This document shows positions 9,957 through 35,104 of a DNA stretch of 64,000 nt, one piece after another; position 1 is the first letter of the stretch, and each line of letters starts with the position of its first letter. The notes beneath the pieces were generated by a model. That model saw only the letters and a program-made list of their open reading frames with translations. It did no database searches and had not been told where the DNA came from. The translations under genes and the position numbers were made by a program. The stretch lies in the sequence record MZ443771.1. One strand, written 5' to 3'.

Positions 9957-10499
9957 ATGACGGAAAAGATTACGCAGTTGGCAAAGTGGTTTGATGCGGC
10001 GAAAGTCGCATTCAAGATGGGGACAGTTAATCCAGACGGTGATGCTGCGTTGCTTCTGGCAATTCACAAACGTCTGATTAAAGAGGTCGAAGATGCTGGT
10101 GATGCAGAAACCAAAGCATTCGCTCAGACAAATCTGTCAGAGTTCATTTCGGATCTGCGCATAGAGCTGCGCATGTTCGACCTGATCTGCAGGCGCTTCA
10201 ACACTGACCTGTACCCTCAGATCAAAATCGGCGATGACGTCAAAATCTATATCGCGCTCATGGCTCAAACGCCGGGCAGTGCTGTAATGGCAATGACGTA
10301 CCTGTATCTTGCTCGCTGCTACACGCTGCAAGACATGATCTTAAACTTCCTCCCGAACGGCTTCCCGGCCTCAGATGCTCTCGGTCTTACGTGGAGCATT
10401 CAGAAAGGGAACAGTGATGCGTTCACCGGAAATCTGGTGGACGATATCGAAACTGTAAATAGCCTGTACAATAAGATGTATAGCTCAGGAGAGAAGTAA
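9957..10499 (+). CDS. hypothetical protein
   Basis: RBS agagga; 180-aa helical ORF. Confidence 0.75.
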   Translation: MTEKITQLAKWFDAAKVAFKMGTVNPDGDAALLLAIHKRLIKEVEDAGDAETKAFAQTNLSEFISDLRIELRMFDLICRRFNTDLYPQIKIGDDVKIYIALMAQTPGSAVMAMTYLYLARCYTLQDMILNFLPNGFPASDALGLTWSIQKGNSDAFTGNLVDDIETVNSLYNKMYSSGEK

Positions 10500-11443: not shown

Positions 11444-12201
11444 TTACTGTGCAGAAAATTGAAGCCCGTTTAAAAAGACTGGACTATACTCGCCCCTCAC
11501 CTAGTCGTGAGATGCTTGAGGGACTTATGAAAGATGGACGCACTCGCATTCTTAGCAAATCAGCTTCGAGTGACCTGTGCAAAGACTCGATGGAATACTT
11601 CGAGTTCTGCCTTTCGCAAGTCGGCTCTTTCTGTACTGCGTCGTACAATGCTGTGGAGATTGGTCTGTCTCTCAACATTCAACCGATTTATATCGCTGCT
11701 GCTATTCACCTGTACGGTAGCGATTGGCAGTTCCGTTTCCTTGAGCTTAAACGTTTCGGTCTGCTTGCCCGCGGTGATTACTCTGTGTGGAAGTCTGCTG
11801 ACGCGTGGTTCGGCCTGGGTGAATGCCGTCGTCGCTTAGTACGTGCTGGGGTAACGAACGAAATCTCCAGCGGTCAGTCTGAGCTTCGCATGGCAGTACG
11901 CAAAGGTGAGCTGGACAAGATTCGTGAGATTGCCAAGAAGTTTCCGCATCGCATGATGTCCATTCTCGACGTGAAGCGTGACCCACTGTATAACGATCCT
12001 CGTATTGCGGCATCACGTAAAGCGCGTGAGAAAGCAAAGGCAGAAGCTGCTGCTGCCGGTAAGAAGCTGGCTGAACCTCGTTCGTACTCTGACCTGAGCG
12101 CTGTGTTCAACGGAGCAATCGCGCCTCGTAATACTGATCGTGGGTTTAGCGATTCGTCAGAAACTCGCGGTACGGTGAACGGTCGTCGTTTTCGTGTCTG
12201 A
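11440..12201 (+). CDS. hypothetical protein
   Basis: 253-aa ORF with a basic C-terminus. Confidence 0.75.
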   Translation: MITVQKIEARLKRLDYTRPSPSREMLEGLMKDGRTRILSKSASSDLCKDSMEYFEFCLSQVGSFCTASYNAVEIGLSLNIQPIYIAAAIHLYGSDWQFRFLELKRFGLLARGDYSVWKSADAWFGLGECRRRLVRAGVTNEISSGQSELRMAVRKGELDKIREIAKKFPHRMMSILDVKRDPLYNDPRIAASRKAREKAKAEAAAAGKKLAEPRSYSDLSAVFNGAIAPRNTDRGFSDSSETRGTVNGRRFRV

Positions 12202-12251
12202 TAACTGCGAACGGTAATTTCTGCTGTCAAAACAAATAACGGAAACCTCCA

Positions 12252-13022
12252 ATGAGCAACATTGATAATACAATGCCTGAGGGCAAGTGGGAGTTCAACG
12301 AGCCTGTTGCTGCTGTGTTCGATAACATGCTGCAAAACTCAATCCCGTCGTATGGCCGTATGCGCGACTTGACCTATCGTCTGGGTCGTCAGTTCGTCAC
12401 GCCCGGTACTGCTATCGTTGACCTCGGAGCTTCTCTGGGTCGTGCTGTTGAGCCGTTCTGCAAAGAGTTCGGCGAGTACATCTACGTTCACGCTGCTGAC
12501 CGTCCTGAGCCAGATCGTGAAATCGGTAACATGTACTGCTGCTACGAAGTCGCTCCTGCGATGCTTGAACGCCTGCGTGAAAACGAAGTGCTGAAAGCGG
12601 CCAAAGCGAAAATCAGTAGCGAATCGCTGGTGGACGTTGACACGTTCCGCTTCGACGAACAGGTTGAGTGCTCGCTCATTCTGTCTGTACTCACTCTCCA
12701 GTTCACGCCGATTGAACATCGTCAACACGTCCTTGAGAAAGTCTATGACTCTCTTGCAAAAGGCGGTGCGTTCATTCTCGTTGAGAAGGTTCTCGGTGAC
12801 GACAACTTCCTCGACCGTCTGCTGGTGGACACGTACTATCACATGAAAGGCGACAACGGCTACACGCAAGAATCTATTGCATGTAAGCGTAAGTCACTCG
12901 AAGGTATTCTGGTGCCTGTCAAAGCTGCATGGAACGAAGAACTGCTGCGCAAAGCGGGCTTCAACCGTGTAGAATGTTTCTACCGCGATCTCAACTTCGC
13001 CGGATGGATCGCAATTAAGTAA
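12252..13022 (+). CDS. cmoA: carboxy-S-adenosyl-L-methionine synthase (CmoA homolog)
   Basis: Collinear with E. coli CmoA: WEFNEPVAAVFDNM..SIPSY, DLGASLG, TLQF, GGAFILVEK, NGYT..I..KRKSLE (the conserved carboxylate-binding Arg), AGF and NF. Confidence 0.9.
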   Translation: MSNIDNTMPEGKWEFNEPVAAVFDNMLQNSIPSYGRMRDLTYRLGRQFVTPGTAIVDLGASLGRAVEPFCKEFGEYIYVHAADRPEPDREIGNMYCCYEVAPAMLERLRENEVLKAAKAKISSESLVDVDTFRFDEQVECSLILSVLTLQFTPIEHRQHVLEKVYDSLAKGGAFILVEKVLGDDNFLDRLLVDTYYHMKGDNGYTQESIACKRKSLEGILVPVKAAWNEELLRKAGFNRVECFYRDLNFAGWIAIK

Positions 13023-13032
13023 GGGAAGTAGC

Positions 13033-14295
13033 ATGAAAGTAAACGGGCGTATCTTAGCAATCGTACCGCACAAGACTCTGGCTGATCGCACGAAGTCTGG
13101 TGTTGGTGCTTACATCGACGGACTCGAAGCGTATGGCTTCTGCGACTTCACCACTGACGGTGAGAACAGTTCCGTAACCAAGAGCTTGTGGTTTAACTAC
13201 GGTGACACCACGCTGAGTGATGGTTACAAAGTAGGGCACATTCAAAGTGAACTGCTTGCTGCTCTTGAGCGTCATCCGTATCGTGCAATCATTTGCAGCA
13301 CATACGAAGCGATTGAAGCTGCTGTCGGTCTGGGCTTGCCAAAGATTATGCCCGTTTACTATCGTTCGCATAACAGCTTCCTGTTGACGCAAGATCTCAA
13401 TGGTCTCGGTGCTGAGAAGATTCACCGTGCTCTACTGCAAGCTGGCGTAACTGGTCTGCGTGTGTTAGCGAACTGTGATTCAACTGCAAACAATCTGGCA
13501 TCACGTTATCCTGTTGCTGCGTCTGTCGCGTACAACTCGTTCAACGTGCCTGACTACAATCCACCAGCAAAGCGCAAGCCGACGCTGTTGATTATCTGTC
13601 GCTACGAAAAGGTTAAGCGCCCTGCGTTTGCTGCTCGTATCGCTGCTGCATCTGGTCTGCCTGTTCGTGTGATGACGGGCAGTGATCGCCAAGTTAAAAG
13701 CTGGCAGAAAGAATTGACCGATGCTGGTGTCAAAGACCATACAGTCGTTAGCGGTATCAGCGGCAAAGAGAAACTTGAGTTCATCGGTGCTTGTACCGTG
13801 GCTCTCTCCTGCGCTGAAATCGAATCGTTCGCTAACGGTGTGCGTGAGTCTATCCCGTACTGCCCAACGTTCATCGTGCAAACATCGAAGTTCGACTGGG
13901 CGAAAGATTACACACGCTTCTGCTCTCTGGACAAACACATCCACGTTCGCACCGTCGACCGTGTGACAGAGCAGGAAGTCACTGAGCTGGGTAATGAGAT
14001 TGCTTACTGGGCTACTACTCGCTACCTGAACAATGCTCAACGTAAAGACTTGATGACCAAGTGGGTTGCTCAAGTCGATAAAGGCTGGGCTGACTTTATG
14101 AAGAATGCCGTTGTTGCTGATGACGGTAAGCCTATGAAAACTGACCTGTCGAAAGAACTCGAACAAAAAGGCGTAGTAGACTGGTCAGAAGTACCTGCGC
14201 TTATGCGTACTGTAAAAGCATTACACAAATGCCATGCTCGTATGGGCCTGACATTCGATGGCACCAAAATCAAAACTAAAGGAAGAAAGAAATGA
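13033..14295 (+). CDS. GT-B fold glycosyltransferase (GT4-like)
   Basis: N-terminal SGVGAYI, C-domain LIICRYEKVKRP (GR...K) and ESFANGVRES (E.FG...EA). Confidence 0.75.
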   Translation: MKVNGRILAIVPHKTLADRTKSGVGAYIDGLEAYGFCDFTTDGENSSVTKSLWFNYGDTTLSDGYKVGHIQSELLAALERHPYRAIICSTYEAIEAAVGLGLPKIMPVYYRSHNSFLLTQDLNGLGAEKIHRALLQAGVTGLRVLANCDSTANNLASRYPVAASVAYNSFNVPDYNPPAKRKPTLLIICRYEKVKRPAFAARIAAASGLPVRVMTGSDRQVKSWQKELTDAGVKDHTVVSGISGKEKLEFIGACTVALSCAEIESFANGVRESIPYCPTFIVQTSKFDWAKDYTRFCSLDKHIHVRTVDRVTEQEVTELGNEIAYWATTRYLNNAQRKDLMTKWVAQVDKGWADFMKNAVVADDGKPMKTDLSKELEQKGVVDWSEVPALMRTVKALHKCHARMGLTFDGTKIKTKGRKK

Positions 14296-15326
14296 GCGTG
14301 ATTGGTGATATCTATAACATTCCTCAACCGTATGCGATGTACTGCGGCAATGCCAAAACCAAAGCAATGGCAAAGATTACTGCCGGTATGGTTGAGTGGG
14401 CTCCTGAGAAGGTATGTTGTGTAGTCGAAGACGCTGAACGTTTGTTCGCTGACGTACCGTGTGTTGAAGTGCGCGATCTCGATAAGACCGACGCTGAAAC
14501 TCTGGTTATCGGCTTTGCGCCATTTGGCGGTCAGATTAACGATGACATTGATCGCGTTGTCTGCGAAGCATTAAAGCGCGGTCTGAACGTTGCTGCTGCT
14601 CTGCACGTCAAACTGGCAGACAATCCTAAATACTTCGCGCTCGCTCGTGAGCACGGTGTATCACTGTATGACTTCCGCCATCACCCTGAGCAATATCCTC
14701 TGGGCACCGGTATTCGTCGTGACGGTATTCGCGTTCTGACTGTTGGCACCGACTGCTCCTGCGGTAAGAAATTCACTGCGCTCGCTCTGACCAAGAAGCT
14801 GACCGAGATGAGTCAGAAAGCTGTGTTCTGTGCTACAGGCCAGACAGGCTTCTTGATTAGCGGTCGTGGCATCAACAACGACACTGTGGTTGCTGACTTC
14901 CTTGCTGGTGCTGCTGAGTGGCTTTCACCTGATGACAAAGACGCAATCTATTTGATTGAAGGTCAAGGCGCTATTCGTCACCCTGCGTATACTGGTGGCA
15001 GCATGAGTCTGATTGCTGGCTCGCAACCTGATGCGCTCGTTATGTGTCACACTGTTGGCCGTAACGTCATGATGGGCACTGAGCGCGAGATCAGTATCAC
15101 GGACGAAATCTCTGCTAACCTTGCAGCGGCTGCGATGCACGACTGGTACCCTCGCGTTGTTGGTATCAGTATCAACTTCTGCGAGTCTGGTATGAGCAAA
15201 GAACAGCGCAAGAAGTATCTGGCGACTATTGAACGTAACATCGGCTACGTAGCGTTCGACCCGCAAGAAGGTGGCGAAGCGTTTGACCGTGTTGCTACTA
15301 CCATAGCGTTGCTGTCGCGCCCATGA
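14292..15326 (+). CDS. DUF1611 / DgcN-family P-loop protein
   Basis: VIGFAPFGG, VGTDCSCGKKFT, ATGQTG, DFLAGAAE, IEGQGAIRHPAY, GSQPDALVMCH. Confidence 0.88.
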   Translation: MSVIGDIYNIPQPYAMYCGNAKTKAMAKITAGMVEWAPEKVCCVVEDAERLFADVPCVEVRDLDKTDAETLVIGFAPFGGQINDDIDRVVCEALKRGLNVAAALHVKLADNPKYFALAREHGVSLYDFRHHPEQYPLGTGIRRDGIRVLTVGTDCSCGKKFTALALTKKLTEMSQKAVFCATGQTGFLISGRGINNDTVVADFLAGAAEWLSPDDKDAIYLIEGQGAIRHPAYTGGSMSLIAGSQPDALVMCHTVGRNVMMGTEREISITDEISANLAAAAMHDWYPRVVGISINFCESGMSKEQRKKYLATIERNIGYVAFDPQEGGEAFDRVATTIALLSRP

Positions 15327-16258
15327 TAGTCCTAATCGACAACGCTGCGTTAGCGAGTAATGCAGCGTATTTAAAATCACTCGCACCGACCATGATTCCC
15401 GTTGTGAAAGGTAATTTCTATGGGCATGGTTTAGATTGCGTGACAGCGTTCGCGTCTGACTTTGACGTGCTTGCAGTGCATAACGTCCAAGAGGCATTGA
15501 CGCTGCGTGAGCTTGGACTTGACCACACGCTGCTGATTCTCGGTGGTACTGACGCGCGTATGTGGAATATAGTTCCTGTATTGAATGCAGCGCAAGCCTC
15601 AACGTATGAAGGCCAGTATGCTGTGTTTGCTGATTGGGGCTGTCGTCGTATCAATGTCAGCCCTGGCCAACTTACCAGTCGCCCAGCTCTCGTTCTCATT
15701 CACTCTGAGGACTACCGTCAGCCTGTGTCTGCGCACACTGCTAACGAGATTGCTGTGCGTTACAACATGCCGCGCTCTCGATTGTCTGTAGGCTCAAGCA
15801 TGAATGCGCTTACACCAGACGCGCCTAAGTTGATGCCGCGTGTTGGTATGGCACTTACCGGTTATAGCAGTGATGAAACTGTTAACGGTAATTTGATCGT
15901 AGCGAAGACAGTGCTTGCTCGCATCTGCGATAAGCTGGATGCGGGTCGAGTATTTGGTTACGGTGCATTAGTGCCTAACAGCGCACACATGTTTCTGTAT
16001 TCGATTGATGTGGGTTATTACGATAACTTATATCAGTCAGAGAACAACACGCCTGTGCATTGCCCTAATGTGCCACACGCTAAGGTCACGTTGCTTACTG
16101 GCGTTGCGCGATCAATCAGCATGAACCATGCCTTCGTATTGTCAGATACTGAGCTACCGTTCGACTCTGAAATTGAATTGCTTGGACCGAACGTTCGCGC
16201 AGATTATCTGGCCAAACTTCACGGAACAACAACTGCGAATATTTTAAGGCTGGGTTAA
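15323..16258 (+). CDS. PLP-dependent alanine-racemase-like protein
   Basis: VVKGNFYGHG (PLP Lys motif VVKANAYGHG), AVHNVQEALTLRELG, PRVGMALTG, FGYG (catalytic Tyr), GYYD and ISMNH. Shorter than a typical Alr. Confidence 0.8.
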   Translation: MIVLIDNAALASNAAYLKSLAPTMIPVVKGNFYGHGLDCVTAFASDFDVLAVHNVQEALTLRELGLDHTLLILGGTDARMWNIVPVLNAAQASTYEGQYAVFADWGCRRINVSPGQLTSRPALVLIHSEDYRQPVSAHTANEIAVRYNMPRSRLSVGSSMNALTPDAPKLMPRVGMALTGYSSDETVNGNLIVAKTVLARICDKLDAGRVFGYGALVPNSAHMFLYSIDVGYYDNLYQSENNTPVHCPNVPHAKVTLLTGVARSISMNHAFVLSDTELPFDSEIELLGPNVRADYLAKLHGTTTANILRLG

Positions 16259-16260
16259 TC

Positions 16261-17130
16261 ATGGCTAAACACGTTTTGCGTAAGCTGTTTGAACAGCACG
16301 TTAAGCAAGAGGTTAAAGCTGACAAAGTTGCGGTGCTGCTGTCAAGCGGCCTTGATGGACTTGTCAGTGCTCTTGCTGCCCACGACTTAGGAAAGAAGGT
16401 ACATGCCTTTACTTTCCAGATGGGTGACAACGAAAGTTTTGACAGCAAACACGCACGTAAAGTAGCAGAGAAGATGGGCTGGGAGTTCACGCTTGTGAAA
16501 GTTCCTACGTCCGACACTGCTATCGCTCAGGGCTGGCGCACACTTCACGCCAAGTATCGCTGTATCAAAAAGCGTGACTACGAGTGTGCTTACCCTATGG
16601 TGTATTGCTACAAGGCAATCAAAGAAGCAGGTTACAAGTACGTTCTCAGCGGCCTTGTTGCTGACGCTTACTTCTGCTTTGCGCGTAATACCCACATCGC
16701 AAAAATCAGCGGCCCGCATAGCGTACTCGAAAAGTTCGACGAGTATCGCAAAGAGTATTGGGCGCCGTGGTTCAAGAACGGTAAGAAGTCTCTCGGCGTT
16801 GACGGCTATAATCCAAGTGGTATGCTGCAACACGAAATGCTGTGCGACACTTTCGGCCTGACTCACGTTAACCCGTGGCTGTTGAAAAAAGTCCATGACT
16901 ACTTCATCGGTCGTTCGTGGCAAGAACTAAATCAACCCAAGCAGAAAATGCCAATAACAGAAGCCTGGGCTGATCACATCGCTGTGGTAGGGCATCGTCC
17001 TCACCGTGGCTATCAAACAGAAGCTGGAGTACCTGCGTACTTCGAACGCTTACTGGATAATCCTGAGATCAACTTCAACGGTCGCAAGCGTGTTATGGAC
17101 CTTGCGCGTGATTGGTCAACGAGGACTTAA
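16261..17130 (+). CDS. asparagine-synthetase-like ATP-dependent amide ligase (synthetase domain only)
   Basis: PP-loop VLLSSGLDG and VLSGLVADAYF (AsnB SGEGADE.F). No N-terminal Cys glutaminase domain. Confidence 0.75.
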   Translation: MAKHVLRKLFEQHVKQEVKADKVAVLLSSGLDGLVSALAAHDLGKKVHAFTFQMGDNESFDSKHARKVAEKMGWEFTLVKVPTSDTAIAQGWRTLHAKYRCIKKRDYECAYPMVYCYKAIKEAGYKYVLSGLVADAYFCFARNTHIAKISGPHSVLEKFDEYRKEYWAPWFKNGKKSLGVDGYNPSGMLQHEMLCDTFGLTHVNPWLLKKVHDYFIGRSWQELNQPKQKMPITEAWADHIAVVGHRPHRGYQTEAGVPAYFERLLDNPEINFNGRKRVMDLARDWSTRT

Positions 17131-17131
17131 T

Positions 17132-17752
17132 ATGTTAGTACACATCATTGACGGAAGCGTAGGCGGTAACTATGTATTCCATAATCTGCAAGAGGCTGGC
17201 ATCAACGCGCGTGTTCATGCTCCTAGTGATCCACGTCGCCGCGCAGTAGCAGCAACCTATCCTTCGCTGTCTATGGGATTTACTCCCGAAGAGATTGAGA
17301 AGCATATCGGTAATGTGCTTGGCACGTATCGCGGTCTGTTCTTGATTAGCAGCTACGTTGGTTCGCTGGTGGCTCGCAACATGATTGACCAGTGTGGTCA
17401 GAGTCATAACATCATCTACTGCGATGATCTCAAGTGCGGGTCTACGCCTGTCGTTGCTTCCTCGATTTCTGTAAATGTCTATCAGAAGCAACGACAACTC
17501 GGACGCATTGCAGGTCGAATCAAACACTTCGACTTCGACCATGAGTTCATTGTAGCTGACAAGGCTGTGCGTTTTGCAGCAGGGTCAGAATTTGATGAGC
17601 ATGGTGCGCGTGAAGAACTGGACGACACGCCCAAGTTCTTATCGAGTCCGTCAATGATTGTTGCTGCACACAAACTCGGTGTGAAGCGCAACGTGTATCA
17701 CAACTACGCTGGTCTGGTGCAAGAGTTCCTTGAAAAGCGCCAGCAGCAATAA
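17132..17752 (+). CDS. degenerate glutamate/aspartate racemase (MurI)-like protein
   Basis: Start reassigned to ATG 17132 (RBS gagga). HIIDGSVGG resembles GVFDSGVGG, and TPEEIEK resembles KS.EEI. The two catalytic Cys positions appear replaced (LISSY, RIKHF). Confidence 0.45.
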   Translation: MLVHIIDGSVGGNYVFHNLQEAGINARVHAPSDPRRRAVAATYPSLSMGFTPEEIEKHIGNVLGTYRGLFLISSYVGSLVARNMIDQCGQSHNIIYCDDLKCGSTPVVASSISVNVYQKQRQLGRIAGRIKHFDFDHEFIVADKAVRFAAGSEFDEHGAREELDDTPKFLSSPSMIVAAHKLGVKRNVYHNYAGLVQEFLEKRQQQ

Positions 17753-17764
17753 CGCGAGGGTACG

Positions 17765-18028
17765 ATGATCAATCGCTTTCAGTTAAAACGAGTTCCAGTG
17801 ATTGAAGCATGTCAGTGGAACGGCGAGAACATTGATGAGATGAATCAATTTCTCAACGGTAGCGGTTACGTTGTAGGTCGCTATGTTCAGATTGGTGTTA
17901 CAGACCAATTCGGTAAGCCGACTCTTGCAAACGTATCAGTCGGCAACTATGCAGTGAAACACGAAGACGGTAAGTTCGACGCAATCACCGCATCAGAATT
18001 GATGGACCTTTACGTACTGGCGGATTGA
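17765..18028 (+). CDS. conserved small phage hypothetical protein
   Basis: IEACQWNGEN...GNYAVK...GKF pattern, common in phage ORFs. Confidence 0.7.
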   Translation: MINRFQLKRVPVIEACQWNGENIDEMNQFLNGSGYVVGRYVQIGVTDQFGKPTLANVSVGNYAVKHEDGKFDAITASELMDLYVLAD

Positions 18029-18035
18029 GGAACAA

Positions 18036-18491
18036 ATGAACCTGTTTTCTATTCTAAAGCAGCAAGTGAAGAAAGCGCTGTCGACCGAAGCTAACCACGA
18101 ACCAGAAATACGTGCGCAGTTCGACTGGCGTTACGCTCTTGAGATCAAAGGGCAGATGTACATTGTAGGCAAGACGGGCGCTAACACCTGCTTCTATATT
18201 GAGCCAGGTACTACCGAGCCTGTTGGTTGTTATCCAGATGCGCTTCTGGAGAAGATTGATCAGTGGGGTGGCAGCAAGTATGTTTCGTTTGCTATCTACT
18301 TCAAACACTTCGATAGCCCTGTCGCTGAGAATATCAAGACAGAAGAACAAGCGCTGAAAGGTAAGCCGAAGACATTTAAGAAAGGTTACTTCATCTGCGG
18401 TGTGACACCGAAAGGCAAGCGTATCAAACTGTATCGCTTGCAGCAAGGTCTCAGCGGTATGCAGTGGGTTGCCGTCGAACCTAAAAAGTAA
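18036..18491 (+). CDS. hypothetical protein
   Basis: RBS gagga. Confidence 0.7.
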   Translation: MNLFSILKQQVKKALSTEANHEPEIRAQFDWRYALEIKGQMYIVGKTGANTCFYIEPGTTEPVGCYPDALLEKIDQWGGSKYVSFAIYFKHFDSPVAENIKTEEQALKGKPKTFKKGYFICGVTPKGKRIKLYRLQQGLSGMQWVAVEPKK

Positions 18492-20755: not shown

Positions 20756-21598
20756 ATGACAGTAATCAGCCCCATTCGTTATCAGGGCAATAAGCGTAGC
20801 CTTATCCCTCTTATTCTTGAAAACACACCTGATGTGAAAGACTGCCCGCGTATGGTCGATGTGTTTGGCGGTAGTGCCACCGTGTGCGCGAACATGCCTC
20901 AGAAGTTTCGCGTCTACAACGAGCTTAGTCCTCAGGTGTATGAGATCGTTAAGATGCTTGTCGAGCAAGACCCGAAGAAAACATTGGGTCAAGTCAAGCG
21001 TCTGGTAAAGCACTGGTGCCTGACAAACAGCAACGAAGCGAACTATGACGCGTTTCGAACTGTCGTCCAGAAGAAGCGTACTCCCATACTTCACTACGTT
21101 GCGCACAGACACGCACACTCGAACATGCTGCGCTTTAACCAGCAGGGTGTGTACAACGTAGGCTTCGGCGATCGTGGTCTGATTGGAAAGTTCGAGGAGC
21201 TTGAGCATGAGCTTACGACATTCCACCAGCACATGCAGGGTGTTCACCTGACGAACATGAAGTACGGTAAGTTGTTGGGTAGATTAGGCAATCAACTGGA
21301 TTGCAATACGTTCTGCTACTTCGACCCACCGTATCTGGCAAGTGGCGCGATGCAGTACGGCAAGTGGACTGAATCAAACGAACGTAACCTGCTTGCTACG
21401 CTTGAACAACTCAATCGCTTAGGCGTACCGTGGATGTTGAGCAACGTTACAGAGCACAGGCATTTCTCGAACGACCTGTTAAAGCGTTGGCTAAAGAAAC
21501 ACGCGACGACCGTGCTCTACCCGAACAAAAGCTATGCGATGAACAACGGCCAGAGTGGCTCGCATGGTACTGTTGAAATTCTGGCAATGAACTACTGA
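20756..21598 (+). CDS. dam: Dam-like (D12 class) N6-adenine DNA methyltransferase
   Basis: SPIRYQGNK, DVFGGSATV and DPPY. Start reassigned to ATG 20756. Confidence 0.88.
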   Translation: MTVISPIRYQGNKRSLIPLILENTPDVKDCPRMVDVFGGSATVCANMPQKFRVYNELSPQVYEIVKMLVEQDPKKTLGQVKRLVKHWCLTNSNEANYDAFRTVVQKKRTPILHYVAHRHAHSNMLRFNQQGVYNVGFGDRGLIGKFEELEHELTTFHQHMQGVHLTNMKYGKLLGRLGNQLDCNTFCYFDPPYLASGAMQYGKWTESNERNLLATLEQLNRLGVPWMLSNVTEHRHFSNDLLKRWLKKHATTVLYPNKSYAMNNGQSGSHGTVEILAMNY

Positions 21599-28849: not shown

Positions 28850-29187
28850 CTACACCAGTAATTCGCTTTGACGAACAGACACGTCAACTGCTGGCAAAGA
28901 TCTTCGGCATACATAAGCCGTTCTTTGTTGTGCGTCGTGATACGATCATCTCAGGTGGTGACTTGGGCTTTCGTGTGTATCTGTCGAATGGCACCAACAC
29001 TGTTACCGTTCCTCGCGTTAAAGGCCTTGACTTGGGCGACAAGCTCTATCTTGGTGATGACGAGGAAGTTTATGAGTGGCATCCTCATATAGGCTGCACG
29101 TATATGGCCATTGGCGATAATCAGCCAGAAGCACTCGCATTTGGTCTTCATCCAATCGTTTTTCACAAAGACAGTCGGAACTCTTAA
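28846..29187 (+). CDS. hypothetical protein
   Basis: ATGA overlap with the previous gene. Confidence 0.65.
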   Translation: MTTPVIRFDEQTRQLLAKIFGIHKPFFVVRRDTIISGGDLGFRVYLSNGTNTVTVPRVKGLDLGDKLYLGDDEEVYEWHPHIGCTYMAIGDNQPEALAFGLHPIVFHKDSRNS

Positions 29188-30290
29188 TGGCAAAGCAAAC
29201 TCTTGATCTACGCGATCCTAATCAGTACGAACTCTATTCCCTGCATTGTGTTGACGAGCAATACATCAATCTGGGCAACGCTATCATCTCTCAGGGTACT
29301 GATGAGTCAGACCCAGGCCGTACAGAAGATACGTGGCGCACCATTATCGGCTGTGGCTTCCAGTTGTCAAACACGCTGATCGCTTTCCCTGCGTTAGTCA
29401 GTGCTCGTAAGAACTGGCTGGCAGCAGTCGATGAGATGTGCTGGATGTCTCGCGGCGAAACGAATATCAGCTCGCTCAATTCCAAAATCTGGAATGAGTG
29501 GGCAGATGAAGACGGCGAGTGCGGCCCTATCTACGGTCTGATGTGGCGCATGTGGCCTGATATCAAAACGTTCCCGACTATTGAGTCGATGAAAGAGCGT
29601 CAGATCAGCGATGCAGAAATCGAGCGCATCTCGAAAGAGATCAATCGCATGAAAGCTGCCGGGTACACTGAAACGCAAATGGCTGACGGTCGTGTGTGCT
29701 ACGAAGGTACAGTTGACCAGTTCGCTGATGCGCTGCGTCAGGTAATGGCCCGCAGTCGTTCTCGTCGTATTCGCGTTCAGGCGTACAACCCGTCCTATCT
29801 GCACATGCAGGGTCTGCCTCCGTGCCACACCGAGTTCGAGTTCAACGTAACCAAGCCGACGCTGTATGAAATCGCTCAGATGGAAGCGCGTCAAATGGCA
29901 CCGGCCGAAGATTCGTTGCACATCGTTGTGACCATGAGATCGAACGATGTGCTCTTGGGCAGGCCATTTAACATCATCGGCTACAGCGCCATGCACCAGA
30001 TGATTGCCAAGTGGGCTGGCTTGAACGTCGGTAGCTTTACGCTCAACACTACCAACACGCACCTGTACACGCATCACTTTGAAGCGTTTGAAAAGCAGCG
30101 TGAGCAGTGGGCAGTTCTCGCAGACAACATGAAGCGCACTGGCGAACCTGTTGTCTATCCTATGCTGGAAATCAGCGACGACATTCTCGGTCTGACGCCG
30201 GAAGAGTTGCTGGACAACGCGAACGCAGAGTGGTTCCAGCTTCTCGATTACGCACCATCACCAGCGGTCAAAGGACGTGTGACGAAATGA
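29187..30290 (+). CDS. thyA: thymidylate synthase (ThyA type)
   Basis: EMCWMSRG, IWNEWA, GPIYG..WR, SRRI, LPPCH, RSND..LGRPFN (Asn, dUMP-specific) and HLY. Confidence 0.93.
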   Translation: MAKQTLDLRDPNQYELYSLHCVDEQYINLGNAIISQGTDESDPGRTEDTWRTIIGCGFQLSNTLIAFPALVSARKNWLAAVDEMCWMSRGETNISSLNSKIWNEWADEDGECGPIYGLMWRMWPDIKTFPTIESMKERQISDAEIERISKEINRMKAAGYTETQMADGRVCYEGTVDQFADALRQVMARSRSRRIRVQAYNPSYLHMQGLPPCHTEFEFNVTKPTLYEIAQMEARQMAPAEDSLHIVVTMRSNDVLLGRPFNIIGYSAMHQMIAKWAGLNVGSFTLNTTNTHLYTHHFEAFEKQREQWAVLADNMKRTGEPVVYPMLEISDDILGLTPEELLDNANAEWFQLLDYAPSPAVKGRVTK

Positions 30291-32268: not shown

Positions 32269-32973
32269 ATGGCAAAAACTGCTACCAAAACAAAGGACGG
32301 AAAAAAGAAAGGCGAGTTGAAGTTTGATCTGAAAAAACTCAATTCAGTCTCTCAGCTCAAGGGCGCAGAGTACAACCCGCGCTTCATTACTGACAGTCGC
32401 TTGAAAGCTCTCGAAGGTTCTCTCGGGAGTTTCGGTGATCTGTCTGGTATCGTGTTCAACAACAACATCAAGTCTGGTGTGTTGATCTCAGGCCACCAGC
32501 GTCTGAAATCAATCGACGGTTGGAAAACTCGCATCGAGATTCAGCCGACGACTGACAAGCACGGTACTATCGGTCTGGGCTACATTCATGCAACGCATCC
32601 GAAGAAAGCTGATCGTGTTATCAGCATTCCTCTGCGTGTCGTGAACTGGACTGATAAGAAAGCTGAGTACGCAGCGAACATCGCAGCGAACGCCCACGGC
32701 GGTGAGTTCGATAACAAGAAGCTCGCCAAGCTGGTTGAGAAACTCGATCTGAATACGATCAAGCCTCAGCTGCTGGGTCTCGACCCGCTTGAGATTCGTG
32801 GTCTGCAAGCCAAGATCAAGATTCAGGCGAACGTCGAAGATACGAAACGTGCTGGCAAGACTACTGGCCAGATGAACGGCAGCACCGGTAAGTTTAATGA
32901 GTACAACCCTGATGATGTGGGTGACACTCTGAACTGCACCTGCCCGCGTTGTGGATTTAAGTTCGAGGGATAA
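32269..32973 (+). CDS. ParB/Srx-like N-terminal domain protein with a C-terminal Zn ribbon
   Basis: YNPRFI...LEGSL..FG.L..IV, LISGHQRL, and C-terminal CTCPRCGFKF. Confidence 0.75.
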   Translation: MAKTATKTKDGKKKGELKFDLKKLNSVSQLKGAEYNPRFITDSRLKALEGSLGSFGDLSGIVFNNNIKSGVLISGHQRLKSIDGWKTRIEIQPTTDKHGTIGLGYIHATHPKKADRVISIPLRVVNWTDKKAEYAANIAANAHGGEFDNKKLAKLVEKLDLNTIKPQLLGLDPLEIRGLQAKIKIQANVEDTKRAGKTTGQMNGSTGKFNEYNPDDVGDTLNCTCPRCGFKFEG

Positions 32974-32974
32974 T

Positions 32975-35104
32975 ATGATCATCAAGCCGCCAACCATGAA
33001 GGAAATCAACAAGCTGGCTAAACCCTGGCGTGGTATGAGTTTCTTCGCAGGTTGCGGTGGGTCTTCGACCGGTCACAAGATGGCCGGTATCGACATTCTG
33101 TTGAGCAACGAGTTTATTGACTCTGCGCGTGAGTCGTATGAAGCAAACCACCCGACAACCAAAGTGCTGCCTCATGATATCCGTCGCTTAGACCCAAGCA
33201 AGCTGTTGCGCTACTGCGGTCTTGCTAAGGGTGAGCTGGATTTGCTTGATGGTAGTCCTCCGTGCTTTACCGAAGACACAATCATCCACACTGCTGACGG
33301 CATGAAGTTCATTTCTGATATGCACGTCAACGATCTGGCAATGACGAGCGTTGGTGAATACTTTCCTGTGTACGACACTATGGTTCGTCCGTATGTCGGT
33401 ACGATGCACAAGATTGAAACGATGCTCGGTAGCAACAAAGCAACGCCAGAGCACCCGTTCTTTGTTCGTCGCTCTCAGGCAGACGGTAGCTACTCTGAGC
33501 CGTTCTGGTGTGATGCGAAAGACGTGCAAGAAGGTGACTTGCTCGGTACGCCGCGCACTACCCCTGACATGGGGATTGACGTGTATCAGGCTCAGATTGA
33601 TCAGTTGCCTAAGTTAGTAGCGGACTGGGTGACTTACCCTGAGTTCTGGTGGATGATTGGTCACTGGTGTGATCGTGGCACAATCGAAACAGTTAACGGT
33701 GTTGACGTCATCTGCTTCGAGTCGCACTCAAGCCTTGAGAACGCGATGATCGAGCAGGCGTTTGATGCGCTTAAAATCAGTAGCCTGAATCGTATCGACA
33801 CGACAACGGCGCAGCGCAAAACATTCCGCACTGTTATCGAAGCAGAGCTGGTGCAGTTCCTGCGTCGATTCGTCAGTCAGGAGCAGAACAAGTTTTCTCG
33901 TCGTCTGCCTGCAATCGTGTTCCATTTGTCAAACGAGTTGAAGCAACAATTCATTCTCGGTTGTGCGGGGCATGACTACGTGACTGCTATGGGCACAAGC
34001 CTTGCTATCACATCTGATAGTCGCCGCTTCCTGATTGAGCTGAACTACCTGTGTGCGTCTGCTTTCAATCGTCCGCTGTTTGACGGTCTTATCTGGGCAG
34101 ACGTTAACTTCGGTAGTGCGTTAACGCCGCGTGAGCGTAACAGTTCACGAGCGCATATCGGCTTCCTGTTCCTGCAGGATGAAGCGCTGTTCATGCACGA
34201 GTTCTCCGATGAAGACCCGCATCTCTGGGTTGAAGTGATTGAGAACCTCGCGTATCAGGCGACCTGTGACGTGTATAACTTCTCTGTGCAGACAGACGAG
34301 ACATACGTTGCAAATAGCATGGTCGTTCACAACTGCAAAGGCTTCTCTACTGCTGGTGTGAAAGAAGAAGGCTGGGGCAAAGAAGTTAAATACAGCGACA
34401 ACAAGTATCAGCAGGTTGATGACCTGTTCGATCAGTATTGCCGTATGCTTCAAGGCATGGAGCCAAAAGTGTTCACTGCGGAAAACGTCAGCGGCCTAAT
34501 CAAGGGTACCTCTAAAGGGTACTTTGTCGAAATCATGAAGCACTTCGACAGATTAGGTTATTATGTTCGTGCTCCGATGCTGAATGCTTGCTGGCTTGGC
34601 GTACCGCAGTCGCGTGAACGTATCATCTTCATGGGTGTGCGCAAAGACGTTGCCCATGCTCTCGGCTATAAGTCTGCTCAGACCGCTGTGCCTGATGTTA
34701 TCCCGTGCGAGACGCAAGCGTTTCTCGGTGATGCGTTGCCGCACATCATGCGATACAAAACAACGCAGCGTGACCTGATCAAATATCTGCCTGCCGTTAA
34801 CGGTCCGATGCCTACGATTACTGCTGCTGATGCGATTGCGTATGAGACTGCGCGATTCTCGTCTGCTGGCTTTATCGAAGACAACAAAGGTCATCGGCGT
34901 AAGCTGACCATCGACGAACTCAAAGTTATCTCTGGACTGCCGTCTGACTATAAGCTGATGGGTGAGTTTGAAGAACAATGGGAACGTCTTGGTCGTATCT
35001 GTGTGCCAGCAATGACACACGCTGCATCTAAGGCTTTCATCGAGCACATTCTTCTGCCGTATGCGAAGAAGCGTAAGAAGAAGCCCGGCGATATCTTTAA
35101 GTAA
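32975..35104 (+). CDS. DNA cytosine-C5 methyltransferase-fold enzyme, predicted carboxymethyltransferase; intein-containing
   Basis: Motif I FFAGCGG, IV GSPP|C-KGFS, VI ENV, VIII PQSRER, IX RKLTIDE. Motif X reads LGRICVP (Arg at 34994-34996 in place of Asn). Start ATG 32975; 352 aa after splicing. Confidence 0.85.
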   Translation: MIIKPPTMKEINKLAKPWRGMSFFAGCGGSSTGHKMAGIDILLSNEFIDSARESYEANHPTTKVLPHDIRRLDPSKLLRYCGLAKGELDLLDGSPPCFTEDTIIHTADGMKFISDMHVNDLAMTSVGEYFPVYDTMVRPYVGTMHKIETMLGSNKATPEHPFFVRRSQADGSYSEPFWCDAKDVQEGDLLGTPRTTPDMGIDVYQAQIDQLPKLVADWVTYPEFWWMIGHWCDRGTIETVNGVDVICFESHSSLENAMIEQAFDALKISSLNRIDTTTAQRKTFRTVIEAELVQFLRRFVSQEQNKFSRRLPAIVFHLSNELKQQFILGCAGHDYVTAMGTSLAITSDSRRFLIELNYLCASAFNRPLFDGLIWADVNFGSALTPRERNSSRAHIGFLFLQDEALFMHEFSDEDPHLWVEVIENLAYQATCDVYNFSVQTDETYVANSMVVHNCKGFSTAGVKEEGWGKEVKYSDNKYQQVDDLFDQYCRMLQGMEPKVFTAENVSGLIKGTSKGYFVEIMKHFDRLGYYVRAPMLNACWLGVPQSRERIIFMGVRKDVAHALGYKSAQTAVPDVIPCETQAFLGDALPHIMRYKTTQRDLIKYLPAVNGPMPTITAADAIAYETARFSSAGFIEDNKGHRRKLTIDELKVISGLPSDYKLMGEFEEQWERLGRICVPAMTHAASKAFIEHILLPYAKKRKKKPGDIFK
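33263..34333 (+). mobile_element. intein (357 aa) with a degenerate LAGLIDADG-type domain, inserted just before the catalytic Cys
   Basis: Starts CFTEDTIIHTADG, has block B ATPEHPF, block F DVYNFSVQTDETY and ends VHN followed by Cys+1. Endonuclease-like blocks WWMIGHWCDRG and QFILGCAGHD are degraded. Confidence 0.92.

Follow-up and report, generated by a model that had tools for sequence, protein, structure and literature searches.

Introduction

Hypermodification of cytosine by way of a carboxymethyl group has been described for Synechococcus phage S-B43 (Yang et al., Nat Commun 2025, PMC12783734). In that phage CmoA makes carboxy-S-adenosylmethionine (carboxy-SAM, Cx-SAM), and CmoX, a homologue of the cytosine C5 methyltransferases (C5-MTases) defined by an SPPC motif together with Arg350 (which in the S-B43 protein, SpCmoX, replaces the motif-X Asn), carboxymethylates C5 of DNA cytosine to give 5-carboxymethylcytosine (5cxmC). 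The asparagine-synthetase homologue SpCmoY then ligates glycine to 5cxmC in an ATP-dependent reaction, both in E. coli and in vitro. Glycine gives the single amide product described for carboxymethylcytosine, and the largest cluster of CmoY proteins in the sequence similarity network (SSN) is glycine-specific; 'alternative amine substrates' and other ligase clusters were left for identification, neither DUF1611 proteins nor racemases are mentioned, and ParBc proteins occur beside many CmoX genes (PMC12783734). Here, we analyze the first 64 kb (64,000 nucleotides, hereafter the window) of Erwinia phage pEa_SNUABM_20 (MZ443771.1, 265.9 kb), a jumbo phage of the genus Alexandravirus with Erwinia amylovora as its host, focusing on a gene at 16261–17130 (plus strand) that is predicted to encode a CmoY-type, AMP-forming amide ligase consisting of an AsnB synthetase domain alone.

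A preliminary description of this gene had proposed that it encodes a second-step amide ligase acting on 5-carboxymethyl-dC DNA, with the amine supplied from outside the protein. This proposal is supported by the comparisons reported here: the homologue SpCmoY catalyzes such a step, and genes for CmoA and CmoX are present in the window. The basic system has been in print since December 2025, so that the ligase idea itself is not new; a literature search found no follow-up to PMC12783734. We consider it likely that the gene encodes a CmoY-type ATP-dependent ligase working on the phage DNA to form an amide-linked hypermodified cytosine, probably with an amine other than glycine and with the participation of a DgcN-like step.

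Results

The ligase gene and its closest characterized relative

The open reading frame (ORF) starts with ATG and encodes 289 aa; its ATG lies 2 nt past the stop codon of the gene before it, and the gene that follows begins 1 nt past the stop codon of the ligase. The depositors labeled the gene 'hypothetical protein', and the orthologue in Dickeya phage AD1 (85% identical) carries the label 'putative asparagine synthase'. The ratio of nonsynonymous to synonymous substitution rates (dN/dS) is 0.10 against AD1 and 0.05 against pEa_SNUABM_1, and six sister isolates are ~99% identical to the window (bases 12000–18000 compared). The gene is intact, without indels, on an independent contig of 265,393 bp from a soil metagenome; this contig is near-identical to the phage, with 36 substitutions and not one indel across 4.9 kb (window 12252–17130). 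Metagenomes of wastewater, tobacco, compost and food fermentation contain related fragments of the same interval (all from public runs). The target is a genuine gene, and its earlier description is accurate except for the neighbors. A scan for promoters and terminators returned nothing above shuffled controls.

A tblastn search of phage genomes with the target protein matched Synechococcus phage S-B43 (8e-36) at a 'putative asparagine synthase' flanked by genes for a methyltransferase-domain protein and a DNA-cytosine methyltransferase, that is, at the CmoA/CmoY/CmoX trio. Compared directly with SpCmoY (A0A514ABJ0), the target is 34% identical over 276 columns, spanning the full length (E 3e-54). 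Both are glutaminase-less AsnB-type domains (~270–290 aa) with a PP-loop and an SG..AD motif, and both are encoded together with CmoA and with a CmoX that has SPPC and the Arg. They differ in the PP-loop (SGGVDS in SpCmoY, SSGLDG in the target), in isoelectric point (pI 5.8 for the acidic SpCmoY, 9.3 for the target), in the clade to which they belong (see below) and in their surroundings: SpCmoY has no DUF1611/DgcN-like neighbor, whereas the target has one, often accompanied in its clade by genes for an alanine-racemase-like (Alr-like) protein and a GT4 glycosyltransferase (GT).

Judged by homology, all three published pathway components (CmoA, CmoX and CmoY) are encoded in the window. The CmoA-like carboxy-SAM synthase, predicted to supply Cx-SAM, is found at 12252–13022 (plus strand); it matches TIGR00740 over its full length (2.8e-41, under the equivalog cut-off) and PHROG 4752 (1.3e-79), is 31% identical to the characterized SpCmoA (E 1e-29), and bears the RefSeq name 'tRNA methyltransferase'. 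The precursor of CmoX, homologous to the cytosine C5-carboxymethyltransferase, is encoded at 32975–35104 (plus strand) as 709 aa including an intein, with matches to PF00145 (5.8e-38) and Intein_splicing. Its exteins are ~40% identical to SpCmoX; S94-P95-P96-C97 aligns with S95-P96-P97-C98 of SpCmoX, and R674 (in ERLGRICVP) with R350 (in ERVGRMVPP). The intein comprises residues 97–453 (357 aa; 33263–34333, plus strand) and splits SPPC at precisely its catalytic Cys, the junctions reading ...LLDGSPP / CFTEDT...VVHN / CKGFSTAG.... It is of the class-1 type (Cys1, a TPEH block, a terminal HN and a +1 Cys) and, because the +1 residue is Cys454, splicing would regenerate SPPC. Intein-bearing CmoX of 709 aa is kept at 55–100% identity in Alexandravirus, Rivsvirus, Y3 and Yoloswag, and the intein is missing from the CmoX of PaBG and S-B43. 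Directly upstream of CmoX, at 32269–32973 (plus strand), a ParB-like protein is encoded (PHROG 620, 3.1e-32).

Domain content and predicted fold of the ligase

The target had been described beforehand as a synthetase domain only, marked by SSGLDG and SGLVAD and without the N-terminal nucleophile (Ntn) glutaminase domain, and Pfam, the motif positions and structure prediction bear this out. Asn_synthase (PF00733, 6.9e-16) covers residues 6–139, the PP-loop SSGLDG occupies residues 28–33 (nt 16342) and SGLVAD residues 130–135 (nt 16648); an Ntn glutaminase domain is absent, as residue 1 already aligns with the start of the synthetase domain and the upstream gene, ending 2 nt before the ATG, leaves no space for one. 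Pfam matches to QueC, NAD_synthase and tRNA_Me_trans are much weaker and confined to the PP-loop region. The NCBIfam scores fall far under every equivalog cut-off, including those for asparagine synthetase B (TIGR01536, 57.1 against 267.1) and QueC (TIGR00364, 27.5 against 150.3, residues 25–85 only), and a direct sequence search of the PDB gave marginal AsnB matches only (E 0.06). An AlphaFold2 (AF2) model from 35 family members (predicted local distance difference test, pLDDT, 95.8; predicted template modeling score, pTM, 0.92) was aligned by Foldseek over ~300 columns with the AsnB-class C-terminal domains of human ASNS, E. coli AsnB, beta-lactam synthetase and carbapenam synthetase, at TMq values of 0.65–0.70, whereas QueC, NadE and LarE gave just 0.3–0.4 (QueC 3bl5, 0.34). 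A plain AsnB, QueC or NadE identity for the target was rejected on these scores and on the fold.

With AsnB, beta-lactam synthetase and carbapenam synthetase (synthetase domains of class II amidotransferases; PDB 1ct9, 8sue, 1mc1 and 1q19), the target shares its fold throughout at ~19% identity and, by analogy, would share PP-loop ATP pyrophosphatase chemistry, in which a carboxylate is adenylated and then attacked by nitrogen; it differs from them in lacking the N-terminal Ntn glutaminase domain and in its predicted substrate, a modified DNA base. In E. coli AsnB the general base is Glu348, within SGEGSDE; judged from the motifs, the target presumably has the Leu of SGLVAD at this place. Residues S28, G30 and D32 of the PP-loop, plus G131 and D135, are invariant in 35/35 family members. 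A Cys-x7-Cys pair (CxKKxxxEC; C101 and C109, window ~16561–16587) is kept in both of the ligase clades described below, with Cys101 invariant and Cys109 kept in at least 90% of members, and His248 is likewise invariant. AsnB is not known to have a counterpart of this Cys pair, which might bind a metal or take part in redox chemistry.

The high content of Lys and aromatic residues, previously read as compatible with nucleic-acid binding, stands as a matter of composition: Lys makes up 9.7% of the target (5.2% in 26 other window proteins) and Phe, Trp and Tyr together 12.1% (9.4% in the same 26). The argument for DNA binding built upon it is weak, however. The ligase family is Lys-rich (8–15%) and mostly basic, which fits DNA binding but is not diagnostic of it, because SpCmoY, which acts on DNA, is acidic.

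A separate ligase clade paired with DUF1611

To place the target within its family, IMG/VR was scanned with the ligase alignment, which gave 292 confirmed relatives; the context counts that follow come from 85 loci (five obtained earlier and the best 80 of the 292). CmoA is present in 68 of the 85 and CmoX in 65–67 (~77%), most of the others being short contigs. Among 185,579 representative bacterial and archaeal genomes (one per species), a single ligase relative was found; it lies on a contig of 161 kb belonging to a metagenome-assembled genome. As far as gene content indicates, the ligase family is practically confined to phages and goes together with 5cxmC.

In the family tree the target belongs to a clade with support of 98/94 (clade A), sister to the clade of SpCmoY-type ligases (clade B), with 100/100 for the two together. 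The clades are separated by ~20 positions with clade-conserved differences, which include pocket-candidate motifs, and by an insertion of 12–13 aa (~residues 168–180 of the target). The clade-A signature comprises SSGLD(G/S), SGLVAD, KKRDYE and HRGYQTE; where the target has SGLVAD, SpCmoY-type proteins have SGIGAD or (S/T)GW(G/A)AD, and in place of HRGYQTE and KKRDYE they have H(I/L/Q)NLQLG and KKTH(F/Y)E. A DUF1611 gene lies directly upstream of the ligase in 10/10 readable clade-A contexts and in none of ~70 clade-B loci, and a DUF1611 search of other viral contigs found it in Alexandravirus genomes only. Judging from tree and gene context, clade A is a distinct ligase sub-family, one absent from the published account (PMC12783734), and the DNA decoration made by its members is probably different from 5cxmC-glycine and not yet described.

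The pairing holds over graded gene content. The order is CmoA-DUF1611-ligase in AD1, CmoA-GT-DUF1611-ligase in pEa_SNUABM_7 and CmoA-GT-DUF1611-Alr-ligase in the window, and distant clade-A relatives from metagenomes, with ligases 37–77% identical, retain DUF1611 next to the ligase. Two of these contigs carry GT, DUF1611 and Alr genes physically embedded between CmoX/CmoA and the ligase: L086 has ParB-CmoX-CmoA-GT-DUF1611-Alr-ligase as a single unbroken block, and L089 has CmoX-GT-DUF1611-Alr-ligase-CmoA. Shorter arrangements are DUF1611-ligase (L102), DUF1611-Alr-ligase (L103 and L104) and GT-DUF1611-ligase with an 87-aa ORF and then a GNAT gene after it (L087), and in L091 a truncated DUF1611 with a degenerate P-loop lies beside the ligase. 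Two candidate tailoring genes were seen on these contigs, a 302-aa GNAT acetyltransferase two genes past the ligase (L087:8192-9100) and a ThiF-family adenylyltransferase upstream (L091:4541-5266).

Genes between CmoA and the ligase

In the window, CmoA is separated from the ligase by three genes that overlap or directly adjoin one another. The first (13033–14295, plus strand; orf420, 420 aa) is an optional member of the module and a putative GT-B/GT4-like glycosyltransferase, assigned from a relative's Pfam match and the predicted fold. It has no Pfam match of its own; a 40%-identical relative carries PF00534, Atlas features score 0.98 to GT4 clusters, and the AF2 model (pLDDT 80) retrieved GlgM, a phage HY126 glycosyltransferase, BshA, SdgB and MshA in Foldseek.

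The second gene (14292–15326, plus strand) encodes a DUF1611/DgcN-like protein with a Rossmann-like domain and a P-loop domain (GTDCSCGKK; PF07755, 2.5e-51, and PF17396, 2.1e-17). It matches NF041892 (DgcN) at 1.4e-91 with a score of 306.9, under the equivalog cut-off of 480, and PDB 7xrj at 4.8e-62, and is 41–45% identical to the DgcN of Pantoea, Dickeya, Pectobacterium and Brenneria. By these matches it is assigned to the DUF1611 family but not to DgcN itself. Both DUF1611 domains and the GTDxxxGKK P-loop of DgcN (D-glutamate N-acetyltransferase, 7xrj) are kept in the phage protein; DgcN, however, is linked to the racemase DgcA, and the phage protein to a DNA-modification ligase. In its normal reaction, DgcN converts acetyl-CoA (CoA, coenzyme A) and D-Glu to N-acetyl-D-Glu.

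The third gene (15323–16258, plus strand), also optional, encodes a predicted alanine-racemase-like, pyridoxal-phosphate (PLP) enzyme of 311 aa with a divergent mid-barrel (Ala_racemase_N, 1.8e-14; TIGR00492 score 54.5 against a cut-off of 168). Two of its motifs are invariant, VVKGNFYGHG with the PLP-Lys (K29) and the one around R173; the second catalytic Tyr, in GYYDN, is present in the window protein but is Glu in the L086 homologue. Of the racemase-family neighbors claimed in the preliminary description, this gene is the one that holds; 14292–15326 is DUF1611/DgcN-like and not a racemase.

The middle genes evolve faster than those flanking them, with dN/dS of 0.13–0.21; between the window and AD1, DUF1611 is 58% identical, whereas CmoA reaches 91% and the ligase 85%.

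Apparent displacement of the ligase in Alexandravirus

The ligases of sister jumbo-phage genera, gp180 of Pseudomonas phage PaBG and gp15 of the Erwinia Rivsvirus pEa_SNUABM_5 (compared as L004:4857-5738 and L005:5869-6693), occupy the same slot downstream of CmoA and have the same domain type. They are nevertheless only 24–26% identical to the target and branch far from both clades in the tree, and the PaBG and Rivsvirus ligase loci have no DUF1611, Alr or GT genes. The Alexandravirus ligase is nearer to cyanophage SpCmoY (34%) than to these same-slot proteins, whereas Rivsvirus CmoA (74% identical to that of the window) and CmoX (57%) are vertical relatives. As the sister-genus ligases are divergent while the flanking CmoA and CmoX are vertical, in situ displacement of the ligase in Alexandravirus is indicated; from these comparisons, the ligase was apparently replaced and DUF1611 gained along with it.

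Other genes in the window

Coupled to the ligase stop codon is a 206-aa ORF (17132–17752, plus strand) with a weak lead to alpha/beta-hydrolases (Atlas 0.88–0.91), conserved in this place in both Alexandravirus (85%) and Rivsvirus (25–26%). Farther downstream, a 151-aa ORF (18036–18491, plus strand) is a homologue of PaBG gp179 (33–34% identity; 53% to the L086 homologue); in PaBG, gp179 separates CmoA from the ligase, the L086 homologue follows its ligase directly, and a search for a functional lead for the window ORF found none.

A thymidylate-synthase homologue of 367 aa (29187–30290; PF00303, 2.3e-55) spans the 266-position model with ~100 residues extra, and a dCMP-deaminase gene is annotated in a sister phage at ~24.4–24.9 kb. 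At 20756–21598 lies a Dam-family N6-adenine DNA methyltransferase (PF02086, 5.2e-23; TIGR00571, 3.7e-29), which may provide a second, independent DNA modification in the phage. The gene at 10499–11086 matches PHROG 335 (4.3e-27) and is without a Pfam match; its relatives are labeled O-acetyl-ADP-ribose deacetylase or Appr-1-p processing (macro-domain) protein.

Discussion

The pathway that we favor would begin with CmoA (12252–13022) making carboxy-SAM, from which spliced CmoX (32975–35104) would move the carboxymethyl group onto cytosine C5 to give 5cxmC; the PP-loop of the target would then adenylate the 5cxmC carboxylate and couple it to an externally supplied amine, yielding an amide-linked cytosine. 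The first two steps and the ligase chemistry are inferred from homology to the characterized S-B43 enzymes. The appended group would be an amino acid other than plain glycine, plausibly D-configured, with the DgcN-like enzyme contributing a coupled N-acyl-transfer step and, in the glycosyltransferase-bearing phages, a sugar being added afterwards. An amine other than glycine is suggested because the ligase forms a separate clade with altered pocket-candidate motifs, a DgcN-like partner, a racemase-like gene and a GT4 gene; the racemase-like gene and the DgcN-like partner point to a D-amino acid. A (D-)amino acid would be a plausible amine donor. More specifically, and as a tentative possibility that we would not rate highly, the combination of clade-A CmoY with DgcN-like, Alr-like and GT4 proteins may produce a new D-amino-acid amide of 5cxmC, glycosylated in some phages and maybe formed via a DNA-tethered acyl-CoA.

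That the closest characterized relative, SpCmoY, acts on DNA supports the favored pathway, and several observations weigh against it. No C5-MTase adjoins the ligase, CmoX being 16 kb off, and CmoX must undergo intein splicing to be continuous and to work. The PP-loop of the target, SSGLDG, departs from SGGxDS, the last Ser being Gly in the closest relatives. No report of DNA modification was found in the AD1, PaBG and Alexandra papers or in a literature search on Alexandravirus DNA. Finally, an amide formed on the alpha-amine leaves a DgcN-type N-acetyltransferase no obvious substrate, and the simplest scheme therefore leaves DUF1611 unexplained. For this reason we consider three schemes, namely ligation of a diamino acid that would be acylated afterwards, plain ligation of glycine, and a thioester relay.

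The target could instead attach glycine, as in S-B43, to give the same product (5gcxmC), with the DUF1611, Alr-like and GT proteins acting later or elsewhere, for example in host D-amino-acid or cell-wall metabolism. Clade A is, after all, sister to the glycine-ligating SpCmoY clade, the catalytic core is invariant, and R142 retains a positive charge where clade B has Lys. We nevertheless regard this as unlikely, given that DUF1611 adjacency is 10/10 in clade A and 0 in clade B, that ~20 clade-specific conserved changes and the 12–13-aa insertion set the ligases apart, and that in L086 and L089 the accessory genes lie inside the cmoX-cmoA-cmoY block. A role away from DNA, as an ammonia-dependent asparagine synthetase, a QueC/NadE-type enzyme, or a ligase for tRNA cmo5U or a small molecule, is very improbable: the weak Pfam and NCBIfam matches to QueC, NadE and LarE and the RefSeq 'tRNA methyltransferase' label on the CmoA gene would agree with it, but the scores are far under the cut-offs (TIGR01536, 57 against 267; QueC, 27.5 against 150), TMq is 0.3–0.4 to QueC/NadE/LarE against 0.7 to the AsnB class, the nearest characterized relative acts on DNA, and CmoX co-occurs in ~77% of loci.

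A thioester relay would assign a direct role to the DUF1611 protein. Here the ligase would adenylate 5cxmC and hand it to CoA, and the DgcN-like enzyme would acylate the alpha-amine of a D-amino acid drawn from the host or from the Alr-like enzyme; 5cxmC is (cytosin-5-yl)acetic acid, and its CoA thioester would be an analogue of acetyl-CoA, so that both DgcN substrates receive a one-to-one counterpart. Such a relay accounts for the obligatory pairing of ligase and DUF1611, the altered ligase pocket and the racemase, and sulfur nucleophiles occur elsewhere in the PP-loop superfamily (ThiI, MnmA and LarE). Against this, CoA use is unknown for any AsnB-family enzyme, a DNA-tethered CoA intermediate is unprecedented, SpCmoY works without a partner, and the DUF1611 of L091 is truncated with a degenerate P-loop; the relay is pure inference, and we hold it to be decidedly unlikely. 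Ligation of a non-glycine amine to 5cxmC in phage DNA by a clade-A CmoY, in conjunction with a DgcN-like step, is the interpretation that we retain.

The locus marks a ligase cluster of the kind left open by the published work (PMC12783734) and places it in culturable phages of Erwinia amylovora and Dickeya solani. Its genetic signature is a ligase paired with a DgcN-like gene, to which a racemase and a glycosyltransferase are optional additions. Since these phages can be grown and natural variants without single genes exist, the chemistry is directly testable: if the proposal is true, AD1 (no GT or Alr), pEa_SNUABM_7 (GT only) and pEa_SNUABM_20 (GT and Alr) would bear a graded series of modifications. 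A ligase with another amine specificity would be useful in enzymatic DNA labeling. For the phages themselves, a base carrying a D-amino acid or a glyco-amino acid would, if confirmed, be a new class of DNA modification, with a bearing on restriction evasion by biocontrol phages.

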